From positions 1,178,001-1,242,000 of the forward strand of contig JBBPEB010000006.1 in NCBI GenBank assembly GCA_039096225.1: 64,000 nucleotides of DNA, written 5' to 3'. The position numbers and the translations under genes are program-made. Below the pieces are notes generated by a model. That model ran no database searches. It worked only from the letters and a program-made list of their open reading frames with translations, and was not told the DNA's origin. Below are positions 9,501-50,002 of this stretch, in pieces. The DNA comes from Blastocystis sp. Blastoise. Taxonomy: Eukaryota > Protista > Bigyra: Opalinata. Each line of letters starts with the position of its first letter. The stretch's first letter is position 1.

Positions 9501-11055
9501 TTTGATTCGCTCTTCTTCTAACTTCTTTAAACGATTGTGTTCTTCTTTTAACTCTATATATATGAATAATAAAGAATAATTAATAGAATATTAAATAGAA
9601 TAATAAATAATAATTAATATAATATTAATAATAATAAATATAATATAAATAATAATAATAAATATGATATTAAAAATAATAAATAAATACCTTCTTCTTC
9701 AGTCTTCTTACGTTGTGACGCCGCACCTTTTATTTCAGAAACGAGGGATTTTGTAACGGTATCATAATCTTTATAAGCTCCGTCATCAACAGATTTATTT
9801 TCAAATTTATTTCTAAAAGATAATAAATTTTGTAATTCTTCAATTCCTTCATCCAATTTATTAATTTCTTCGTCGACTTTAGCTTTTTCACGTTGTCTCT
9901 CTTCTTTATATTGTTTACTTTTATTAATAATTTCCATCATAATTTCTTTATGTGTTTTCGGTTTATCTCTAGATTCTCCTTCAAATTCTCCTTCTCCCGC
10001 GGGAATATTCTTAGTACGTTCATAATATTCATTCATTTCCTTTTCCATATCTAATGAATCTTCACTATCGTCAGAATCATTCACATCTTTCATAGCTAAT
10101 TTCCATTGTTTTTCAACTATAAAGAGTATATTATAGTATATTTTAATTTATATTATGTGATATATGTTATTATATATATAATAAAACTACTATACTATAA
10201 TATTATATAATATTTCTATAGAGAAAAATAATAATAAATAGTATAGCCACTAATATATATATATAAATATATATATATACAATTCAATTCTTCTCCCTCA
10301 TGTGTCAATTGATCATCATCATTATCCGCTAAAGCAAAACGATTCTTCTTTAATTGCTTCTTACGCTATATATAATAACAATTATTATATTATTATTATT
10401 ATTTAACAATATTATTATTTAATATTTTAATAATAATATAATTAATATTAATATCTCAGATAATAATAATAATAATAATAATAATAATAATAATATACTT
10501 CTGCTTGAAGTCTTTTAATTAATTTATCTTCAGCACTTATAGAAGCATCATTCTCTCCAAAACGTCTATATTATATAATAATAACAACAATAAACAAAAT
10601 ATAATACTAATAAAACCAACAAAATATAATAATAAAACAAAAACAAAAACAACTTACCGATCTTTAAATAAATTCTTGTTAGATTCATGATGATATTGAG
10701 ATTCTAATTCCGTTTGGCGTTGAGTTAAAGCTTTATTCTTAGCAATAACAAGATTTCTCGTACGACCTTTTACATTTCTACCAGCAATACTAGAGATTCA
10801 CATAAAATTAAAATGAATATAGAATATTAACAACAAATGAAGTATACTTTTGATGAAGATTTTTGTTCTTTTTTATTTCAAAAGGATTCTTCGATAACCT
10901 ATATAATTCAGATCATATTTTAAATAAAAAAGAATAATACTTCTCAATTTTAGATTCCTTTAATTGAGGTCTATTAGTACGCATCTAAAAAATAAAATGG
11001 TTTCGACACTCATATATACCTTAGATGCTAATTGAGCTTTCTTTCCTTTAGGCAT
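6531..11055 (-). CDS. NOP14: Nucleolar protein 14 (SSU processome), multi-exon
   Basis: Spliced frame MPKGKK...NPFEIK...FKDRRFGEND...LTHEG...KPKTHKEIMMEIINKSKQYKEERQ...KAVAREIKRDN; all junctions checked are GT-AG. Confidence 0.9.
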
Positions 11056-11212
11056 TTTGATCTACAATATGTCTATGAAAAACAAAACAAAATATTCTGG
11101 TTTTCTTTGTTTTTTTATTTTTGTCGAATTCCCATGAAACTTCAATTTATAAAAGGCAGATTTTCTAATCTTCACAAAAGAATCATATTTATATTTTTTT
11201 TCGTTTTGATAA

Positions 11213-47500: not shown

Positions 47501-50002
47501 CTACTATTTCTACAGCACCTCAATCACTTCGTTATGATCCCTCAGGAAATTCGATTCCTTCTCCTTCTTCATCATTAACGGATACATCTTTGTTAACCAA
47601 TGAAAATACAGCATCTATAAATATCAGTCCCTCACTTCATCACGCCATGACAAACTCTATGGTGAAACACAAATCATCTATTCACCAATCAATTTCTCTC
47701 CCTCCAACTCTTTCTCCTACTTCTATACCTACATCAAATAACCGCGGGGATCTTTGTCCTGAGGATGTTCCTATATCTTCTGATGGTAATTCCTTATCAT
47801 CACCACTTACCGCGCTTGAATCCCTCGCAAATAATCCAATAGAATCAACATTATCATCAACATTACAAAACCCTCTTCAACCCTCACTACATCAACCAAT
47901 AGATACTTCTATTGAAAACACAAATCATAATACTATTCCCAATCCGTTAGAAAACCCTCTTGATTCTGATTTGTCATCTGCTATAGATAATGAGATTAAT
48001 ATGGATACCATTAATACTGTCATCAATAATGGAATCAATAATACCATAAATCCCACGGGAAATAACACAATTCCTTCACAAATTCGTCTTTCGCATTCTA
48101 TTCCAGCCATGCCGTCAATGACGCACCCTCTGTCATCGTCAATCCCTCAATCCCTCCTTTCATCGTTAAATAACCCTCTTTCTGATTCATTATTAGCCAA
48201 TGAAAATAATCTATATAAAGAAAGAGATAAAGATAATAATAATAATATTAATATTAATAACAACGGTGATATTATGAATTTCTTATCCACAGGTGCTACT
48301 TTTGTTCATGTATATATATATCATATTATTATATTTATTATTATTATATATTTATTATATTATATATTTATTATATTATATATTTATTATTATTTTATAT
48401 TTATTATTATTATTATATAGGAATTTGGATTAAGATTTAAATTTTTTGAGGGTGGTTCCTGTCAAATATCTGCAATAATGAGAGTATATATATATATATA
48501 TTATTATTATTATTATTATATAGTATTCGACACCTCCTGATTCTGATTATCCCTCATTATTCTGTTTATTCGCTTCTAATTATATACATACAGATAAACA
48601 ACAGCTTGTATATATTTATATATAGTGTTTTATTTTATTATTTATTATATATTTACTTCTTATTAATATTATATAGTTATTTAAACATATAATAAACACA
48701 ACATTTCGTTGTATTGATGTCAATGCTAGTCCCTCATTCCCTATTCTTGGCAGTCCCGCGGGAATTATGCTTAATACATACCCTTATTCTCCATATGATT
48801 CTTTTCTATATATATGTACTAGTATATATATATTTATTATTATTATTATTATTATTATAATATTATTATTATTATTATTATTATTATTATTATTATTATT
48901 ATTATTATTATTATTATTATTATTATTATTATTATTATTATTATTATTATTATTATTATAAAAATAATAATAACACAATATATAACTCTATATTACTTCT
49001 TCTCTAGATCAATATAAAACTATAAATAAGCATATAAATTCATGGTATATGCCAAATGAGGCAAATAATGAGATATATATAGATGAAGATAAGTATATAA
49101 ATTGTTTTTATGATTTAGCGAAATATATGGCATTATATTATTTAAAAATGACATCTGGATATAAACGAGTATTTAATATACAAATAAAAGGTTTAAAAGA
49201 TATGAATGATGGATATATATTATTATATACAATAACATCAAATATATATCTACGAACTATGTATATATATTATTATTAATAATTATTATTTAATAGAATT
49301 ATATAATTATATATCTATATAGTTTATCTAATAAAACTGACAGTTTCCCGTGGTTAATTATATTAGAATCTATAGGTAGATGTGGTATATTAATAGAAAG
49401 ACGAAAAATAGAAATATATATAAATGAAATATGTATATTTAAAGAAGGAAGAGAAAAAATATTAAAAGAAGAAGAAAAGAAGAAAATATCATCAACTATG
49501 AAATCTAAAGAATATGAGTATATATATTTATATTTATATATATATATATGTTATCTATTATCTATATTTTTATTATTATATTTTATGTATTATCTATTCA
49601 TTAGGTAATAATAATAATAATAATAATATATATAGTATACAAATCAATATAAATGATGGTACTTCTGATATTCGCGGGATTATGACTGATTTGCCGAGTA
49701 GACTCATTCCTAAACATGAGAAAGTTATACCTACGCCTGTTGCTAGAACTACAAGAAGTAGTAAAACTAATAATAATAATAATAATACTAATAATAATAA
49801 TAATACTAATACTAATAATAATGCTACTAGTAATACTACAAATAATACTACTACTACTACTAATAATAATAATAATAAATATGGGAATACTCCTGTGTAT
49901 AAAGATTATGACGATAGTAGCGTCGATAACGACATCGATATTTCAAATCCCAGTGAAAAACCTATAGATAATGTTATTGATGGAAATTCTATGGTTATTT
50001 AA
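44553..50002 (+). CDS. Hypothetical multi-exon protein with central S/P/N-rich low-complexity region
   Basis: About 15 canonical GT-AG introns keep one open frame. No family recognised. Confidence 0.6.

Follow-up and report, generated by a model that had tools for sequence, protein, structure and literature searches.

A highly iterated 12-base palindrome in the AT-rich genome of a tortoise Blastocystis, a candidate site for a dimeric DNA-binding protein

Cyanobacterial genomes carry a hugely over-represented GC-rich 8-base palindrome called HIP1 (GCGATCGC), which occurs roughly once per kb and whose function is unsettled. According to the HIP1 literature (PMC4390886), this palindrome lies within coding DNA, is found in all frames and alters amino-acid use. 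Here, we describe a comparable signal in Blastocystis sp. 'Blastoise', a tortoise isolate whose 33.3 Mb genome (assembly GCA_039096225.1, 34 contigs) has 22% GC and TTAGGG as its telomere repeat. The stretch analysed, hereafter the window, corresponds to 64,000 nucleotides of contig JBBPEB010000006.1 (positions 1,178,001 to 1,242,000), likewise with 22% GC. It contains nine cores of a 12-base palindrome, TTCCC(G/A)(C/T)GGGAA, that is found hundreds of times above chance in this AT-rich genome. As with HIP1, copies are found in every frame within genes and distort codon and amino-acid use; unlike HIP1, the signal has a eukaryotic host, a density of only ~1 full site per 19 kb, a recognition sequence that extends over 12 bp with a degenerate R-Y centre, and isolated half-sites that are also enriched.

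A preliminary description of the window had listed nine CCCRYGGG cores, and exactly nine were found, all where it had placed them: six CCCGCGGG, two CCCACGGG and one CCCGTGGG, without any further CCCNNGGG in the window. Its chance expectation of well under 0.1 copies was about right, since 100 dinucleotide-preserving shuffles of the window averaged 0.10 copies and never exceeded 1. Genome-wide, CCCGCGGG was found in 742 copies against 0 for its reversed control, which is a ~1000-fold excess over the ~0.7 copies expected with C and G at 0.11 each. CCCACGGG and CCCGTGGG added 424 + 375 = 799 copies (3 + 3 for the reversed controls), and the full 12-mer TTCCCRYGGGAA was present 453 times (reversed control, 0). 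The corresponding counts were 2023 versus 192 for CCCNNGGG, 378 versus 142 for CCCWWGGG and 303 versus 0 for TCCCGCGGGA. Using an unbiased ranking of 8-mers in 264 kb of DNA (the window together with 200 kb from contig 2), CCCGCGGG came first at ~1870 times its order-2 Markov expectation, with overlapping words taking the next places. The HIP1-like character proposed from the window, a GC-rich palindrome far above what base composition predicts, thus extends to the whole genome.

The outer triplets of the core turned out to be strict. The one-off variants CCTGCGGG and CCCGCAGG, which are synonymous in the commonest frame and keep Pro-Ala-Gly, total only 22 copies genome-wide against the 742 of CCCGCGGG. 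The centre, on the other hand, tolerates a G-to-A change on either half, with 742 copies for GC, 799 for AC and GT together and ~204 for AT. The latter number corresponds to CCCATGGG and was extrapolated from the first 50 of the 378 CCCWWGGG matches, which included 27 with a CATG centre (~54%), 22 with AA/TT and 1 with TA. This share, like the split of the 12-mers by centre type given below, rests on first-50 matches that were all on contigs 1-4. The claim that the core always contains a CpG is therefore correct for the window and does not hold for the genome, where these ~200 CCCATGGG copies also exist. After dividing by base frequencies, each central G-to-A change costs ~6.7-fold and the effects of the two halves multiply, so that the series of centres looks like the behaviour of independent and additive half-sites, as in binding energetics.

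The architecture of the site is symmetrical. When CCC-Nk-GGG spacings were compared, the only prominent one was k=2 (38 copies); the 18 copies with k=3 are read as k=2 sites with a fourth C or G, a reading that comes from examples rather than from a site-by-site count. Everted and direct arrangements of CCC and GGG stay at background. Once symmetrised, the half-site reads Y-G-G-G-(A 72%, G 22%, T 7%)-(A 68%)-(T 50%). No conservation was detected beyond ~7 bases from the centre and, since nothing is conserved farther out, the copies do not belong to a dispersed repeat. With only the inverted N2 spacing enriched and with symmetric half-site flanks, the dimer-like architecture that had been suggested is well supported. 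Left and right flank variants vary independently of each other (Fisher p=0.68), and this lack of covariation argues against a hairpin, an RNA stem or a cruciform. Flanks and centre are nevertheless related: complete TT/AA flanks were found on ~37% of AC/GT-centred sites versus ~11% of GC-centred sites (extrapolated), and GC centres made up 9/50 of the first 50 of the 453 12-mers versus 42.5% expected (p=0.0003). Weak centres thus go together with strong flanks, as a threshold on total affinity predicts. Isolated half-sites are enriched as well (CGGGAA 83 copies versus 11 for AAGGGC), and 33/112 half-sites (about a third) are paired into a palindrome versus ~1% by chance.

Most copies are coding, and we compared their number with what codon usage would give. 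When synonymous codons were shuffled in confident open reading frames (ORFs) with the amino-acid sequence preserved, a codon-aware control that the preliminary description had proposed, 0.15 copies were obtained on average (maximum 3 in 300 shuffles) versus 17 observed. T-ending codons dominate in this genome (CCT 69%, GCT 67%, GGT 55%), and the motif uses rare ones instead, such as CCC (7.7% of Pro) and GCG (6.7% of Ala). Pro-Ala-Gly was encoded either as CCT-GCT-GG or as CCC-GCG-GG, without intermediates. In the sample of confident ORFs, this tripeptide was seen 10 times versus 1.5 expected (about sixfold), with 6/10 motif-coded, and Pro-Thr-Gly 9 times versus 3.0 expected, with 4/9 motif-coded. 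The motif thus overrides codon choice and sometimes also the amino acid (Pro-Ala/Thr-Gly, Ser-Arg/His-Gly, Phe-Pro-Arg). Its use is not obligatory, as had already been noted.

In a set of 46 sites, the three reading frames were used 22, 17 and 7 times, giving I/F/L-P-A/T/V-G, S/P-R/H-G and F/I-P-R, respectively, with DNA flanks that are alike; ~10% of these sites were outside any ORF of at least 100 nt. Non-palindromic half-sites showed no strand bias, with 24 in sense and 25 in antisense orientation. Such independence of frame and strand agrees with the earlier proposal of a signal that is superimposed on the code and acts on double-stranded DNA. Copies occur in unrelated genes, among them Nop14, kinases, Trm5, a PHD finger, a DUF676 esterase, an actin-like exon and He_PIG/HRM surface proteins, showing that the motif is not confined to a single repeat family. 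Where copies overlay conserved residues, as in the PFALPAG stretch of Trm5 or the LPxG of He_PIG repeats, they do so without insertion, and the Nop14 alignment differs by at most 2 residues at the site, in an unconserved stretch.

Looking at each core in the window illustrates this diversity of contexts. The CCCGCGGG core at 9996..10003 (TCTCCCGCGGGAAT) is read in frame 0 of the minus strand as I-P-A-G, where the Nop14 exon encodes an acidic stretch with little conservation. Two cores lie in the annotated gene WA158_003291, which encodes a He_PIG surface protein: CCCGTGGG at 19548..19555, within the full 12-mer TTCCCGTGGGAA (I-P-T-G, residue 588), and CCCGCGGG at 20035..20042 (TTCCCGCGGGGAA; F-P-A-G, residue 490), at the conserved LPxG within a He_PIG repeat. 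The deposited annotation gives this protein 1759 residues, which places both sites in mid-gene. The CCCGCGGG core at 30142..30149 (TCCCCGCGGGGAA) encodes L-P-A-G in exon 29920-30219. In the second surface-protein gene, the CCCGCGGG core at 33103..33110 (TCCCCGCGGGAAT; L-P-A-G) lies in a He_PIG repeat and its flanks are homologous to those of the CCCACGGG core at 34693..34700 (TCCCCACGGGAAT; L-P-T-G in a He_PIG repeat), these two belonging to duplicated repeat units; the conserved LPxG of He_PIG thus carries three of the window's sites (20035, 33103 and 34693). The CCCGCGGG core at 35432..35439 (TTCCCGCGGGAT; I-P-A-G) is in an exon with a weak He_PIG match. The last two are the CCCACGGG core at 48052..48059 (ATCCCACGGGAAA; N-P-T-G), in a 426-codon ORF (47140-48417) with no Pfam match, and the CCCGCGGG core at 48755..48762 (GTCCCGCGGGAAT; S-P-A-G), in a short and weakly scoring ORF. 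Genes are interrupted by GT..AG introns, the two inspected (31596-31681 and 31847-31954) being ~85-110 nt long. The half-sites listed by the preliminary description were also present at the places given, except that those at 29667, 29982, 39811 and 46560 are a different, E2F-like word, TCCCGCC(AA), and that only ACGGGAA/TTCCCGT is found at 22864 and 59102.

That the motif is specially tied to exons, as had been thought, was not borne out. ORFs of at least 210 nt hold 94% of the sites versus 93% of all GC-only hexamers, and a stricter coding call gave 63% of sites versus 55% of GC-only hexamers. Sites are in exons because G and C mostly exist in exons in this genome, and their location does not speak for a function linked to exons. 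The GC profile around sites is also the same as around other GC-rich pentamers, with both lying in locally GC-richer patches, so that neither a special footprint nor a conversion tract is indicated.

Several eukaryotic factors bind sites that resemble this palindrome. The metazoan EBF/COE site (ATTCCCNNGGGAAT), to which the preliminary description had pointed, has the same half-sites, inverted, with 2-bp spacing and T/A flanks. EBF sites prefer a Y-R centre, whereas this palindrome has an R-Y centre that favours a CpG, and the host is a stramenopile. A six-frame genome search for the COE domain (PF16422), run without a positive control, gave 0 candidates; on this translated sequence, the domain is likely absent, and the EBF/COE reading did not hold up. 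The CSL/Su(H) site CGTGGGAA is contained exactly in the commonest 12-mer, TTCCCGTGGGAA. CSL binds as a monomer and the T of TGGGAA is nearly invariant in its sites, whereas the most enriched centre here (CGCGGGAA) lacks this T. The everted CGG sites of fungal Zn2Cys6 proteins (PDRE, TCCGCGGA) share a CCGCGG core and T...A flanks with the palindrome, which differs by an extra C/G pair on each side and by a host that is not a fungus and in which no Zn_clus domain was detected, likewise in a search without a positive control.

E2F/DP was also considered as a reader, since each half TTCCCGCG reads like an E2F site (TTTSSCGC; TTCCCGCCAAA for E2F7/8); the genome contains seven E2F_TDP matches above cut-off. 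These proteins are the nearest candidates, but the palindrome does not fit E2F. The CACG/CGTG (799) and CATG (~204) centres, meaning the abundant CACGGGAA/CGTGGGAA halves, break the CGC core, and the core of the palindrome has 8 bp versus 6 bp for E2F. The coding position does not fit either, with 63% of palindrome sites in confident coding sequence versus 29% for TCCCGCC. The canonical E2F-like word TCCCGCCAA is, besides, enriched on its own. Since TCCCGCC is mostly outside confident coding sequence, it fits a promoter element and a separate signal. E2F7/8-like words, (A)TTCCCGCCAA/GGCGGGAA, are separately enriched and lie in the window at 29667, 29982, 39811, 46560, 27275, 27287 and 62300.

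Considering these observations, our preferred reading, which we rate at about even chances, is that the palindrome is the site of a homodimeric DNA-binding protein and is kept by selection. TTCCC-R-Y-GGGAA would be recognised on double-stranded DNA by a sequence-specific protein acting as a symmetric dimer, each subunit of which would read the half-site 5'-YGGG(A/G)A-3', and single half-sites (CRCGGGAA) may be used too. While the genome as a whole was driven down to 22% GC, selection would have retained or produced ~1,700 full sites and a larger number of half-sites, which would appear where GC-rich sequence exists, i.e. in exons, and override the codon and sometimes the residue. Both the reading by a protein dimer and the maintenance by selection rather than by a repair bias are what we infer from a motif that shows symmetry, fixed spacing, independence of strand and frame, an excess over codon-aware nulls and scarce one-off variants. 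Since the sites are inside genes and not at promoters, they more likely serve chromatin organisation, replication origins or enhancer-like regulation than act as classical promoter elements. A number of points speak against such a protein. No binding protein was identified for the palindrome: in addition to the COE domain, Zn2Cys6 (Zn_clus) and CG-1/CAMTA domains were not detected in the genome (again without a positive control). Sites in mid-gene, such as those at residues 490 and 588 of 1759, and functionally unrelated host genes are unusual for a transcription-factor regulon. About half of the Pro-Ala-Gly tripeptides in the sample carry the word, a pervasiveness that would also fit a mutational drive. 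Finally, the AC/GT and AT centres are also the deamination products of a methylated inner cytosine.

The main rival, which we consider unlikely though well ahead of the remaining ones, is precisely such a HIP1-like drive, in which a cytosine methyltransferase or a context-specific mismatch repair (very-short-patch-like) would restore or create CCCRYGGG, the copies being individually functionless. What is known of HIP1 itself (PMC4390886) is matched here by a CpG-bearing palindrome in coding DNA that uses all frames and changes amino-acid use; together with the rarity of one-off outer variants (22 versus 742) and the share of Pro-Ala-Gly tripeptides that bear the word, this speaks for a drive. 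So does the decreasing abundance from AC/GT to AT centres, the series expected if a methylated inner C deaminates. The one-off variants are nevertheless not below chance (22 versus ~5), so that near-sites show no sign of conversion, and weaker centres with stronger flanks are unexpected for decay products of perfect sites. The 12-bp preference and the enriched isolated half-sites are also unlike the site of a methylase or a nickase. As for the enzyme, a single genome match to the C5-methylase domain (PF00145) was found, at positions 406469-406912 of contig C34; it covers profile positions 1-142 and contains one in-frame TAA, which is probably an intron. This locus favours a drive, although its product might be a tRNA enzyme of the Dnmt2 type. 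Depletion of bulk CpG is mild (observed/expected 0.75-0.89) and TpG is not in excess, contrary to what a methylation-based drive would suggest. Altogether, the HIP1-like claim of the preliminary description stands for the iterated palindrome, its use of all frames and its conflict with codon bias; the methylation or repair drive is not established by one C5-methylase-domain locus and a barely depleted CpG.

Much less probable is that the copies are protected relics of a GC-richer ancestor, the AT-biased mutation pressure of this lineage having erased GC except where the word was shielded by a bound protein or a spared context. According to the genome paper (PMC12129017), human-type Blastocystis have 39-55% GC and three tortoise isolates 21-23% GC, with genomes of 26-33.3 Mb; at 50% GC, ~230 copies of CCCGCGGG would be present by chance in ~15 Mb (calculated), and the sites do lie in locally GC-richer patches, as do other GC-rich words. 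The 742 + 799 copies and the 453 12-mers nonetheless exceed the chance content of a 15-30 Mb ancestor with 50% GC, in which ~2 copies are expected for any one 12-mer. AT drift does not explain why, on either side, flank positions 5 and 6 prefer A and not T, and the reversed word has 0 copies.

We find it very improbable that the copies come from mobile elements, as footprints left by excision, as solo terminal repeats or as targets of a transposon with a CACGGG-binding transposase, given that conservation stops at ~7 bases from the centre, that conserved Trm5 and He_PIG residues are overlaid without insertion and that the Nop14 alignment hardly differs at its site. Least credible of all, and largely refuted, is that the word acts in RNA or protein, whether as an element of the mRNA, as a pause at rare codons or as a Pro-Ala-Gly motif under selection (for example in He_PIG repeats): most copies are exonic, frame 0 (P-A/T/V-G) is the commonest (22/46) and some copies are on the conserved LPxG of He_PIG, but three frames are used, half-sites are equal on the sense and antisense strands, flanks are symmetric regardless of the coding strand and lack stem covariation, the synonymous-shuffle null gave 0.15 versus 17, host genes are unrelated and some copies are outside ORFs.

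The palindrome is not the only over-represented word. A second type of half-site, TAACCG, forms its own over-represented palindrome, (T)AACCGCGGTT(A), and hybrids with the CGGGAA half, both in the window and in the contig 2 sample. In the window, the second type of palindrome (TTACCGCGGTTAT) has its CCGCGG at 27212..27217, and hybrids are found at 37267..37272 (ATAACCGCGGGAAT, a TAACCG half plus a CGGGAA half) and at 47742..47747 (ATAACCGCGGGGAT); the same or partnering factors may read both types of half-site. In the 264 kb, the E2F-like word TCCCGCCAA, the E-box/G-box-like GCACGTGC and the bZIP-like GATGACGC were also enriched, with GCACGTGC and GATGACGC/TGACGCAG at 30-45 times expectation. 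Since such further CpG-bearing words that resemble known factor sites are enriched, functional GC-rich sites stand out in this genome, a point in favour of a protein site.

An inverted duplication was also noticed in the window (13606-16044 and 53657-56116), with arms of ~2.4 kb that are 95-99% identical and ~37.6 kb between them; this segment contains 8/9 of the motif sites. Both arms carry coding-like ORFs and the hybrid half-site ATAACCACGGGGAT (15346/54431), and they may represent either a segmental duplication or both ends of some large element. Between them, on the plus strand, 23176-25515 is a 780-codon ORF made nearly entirely of Asn/Ser/Ile low-complexity repeats (NSINN units), which fits the low-complexity content of 12% reported for tortoise isolates.

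Close relatives were looked for with RPL3 and the surface proteins, and these searches returned, apart from the organism's own proteins (locus tags WA158_; 100% identity for a full-length RPL3 gene and the large surface protein of the window), only human-type Blastocystis at no more than 73% identity; a metagenome scan for closer relatives also had 73% as its best identity. Contigs totalling ~40 kb and taken as human-type Blastocystis (54% GC) contained 4 CCCRYGGG versus ~4 expected, and two syntenic metagenome contigs from gut eukaryotes (35-39% GC, 42 kb in total) contained 0, both samples being too small to show absence. The latter two, ENA contigs with 39% and 35% GC, share Dymeclin, Tim17, TYW3, Scm3, ROK1, EMP70 and NopRA1 in synteny, with ~44% identity to the ROK1 exon of the window, and might represent additional Blastocystis-like lineages with intermediate GC. 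When the genome paper (PMC12129017) was searched by term, neither a palindrome nor methylation came up, and the passages retrieved for 'motif' all concern the 3'-end element of human subtypes. Judging from titles and abstracts, the literal words CCCGCGGG and TCCCGCGGGA occur in the literature only as apparent primers or in unrelated constructs, and our searches returned nothing relevant on Blastocystis transcription-factor motifs or on highly iterated palindromes of eukaryotes.

We tentatively propose, as a possibility that we still hold to be doubtful, that a highly iterated palindrome exists in this eukaryote too, in the form of a 12-bp word that a dedicated reader, or else a methylation/repair system, would keep at ~1,700 intragenic places for a function across the genome. 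For three tortoise isolates, nanopore raw signal, RNA-seq and Hi-C data already exist, making the question directly testable. Since the background composition makes chance copies essentially impossible, the palindrome also offers a clean case for separating selection at the DNA level from selection at the protein level. If more than 1,500 intragenic copies are indeed maintained, a DNA reader or a repair bias for which our literature search found no eukaryotic counterpart acts across the genome of this lineage, and the pressure involved would be strong enough to rewrite proteins, as the excess of Pro-Ala-Gly suggests. The word may then define replication origins or chromatin boundaries in a genome that is too AT-rich for ordinary cues, or it may mark host DNA as self.

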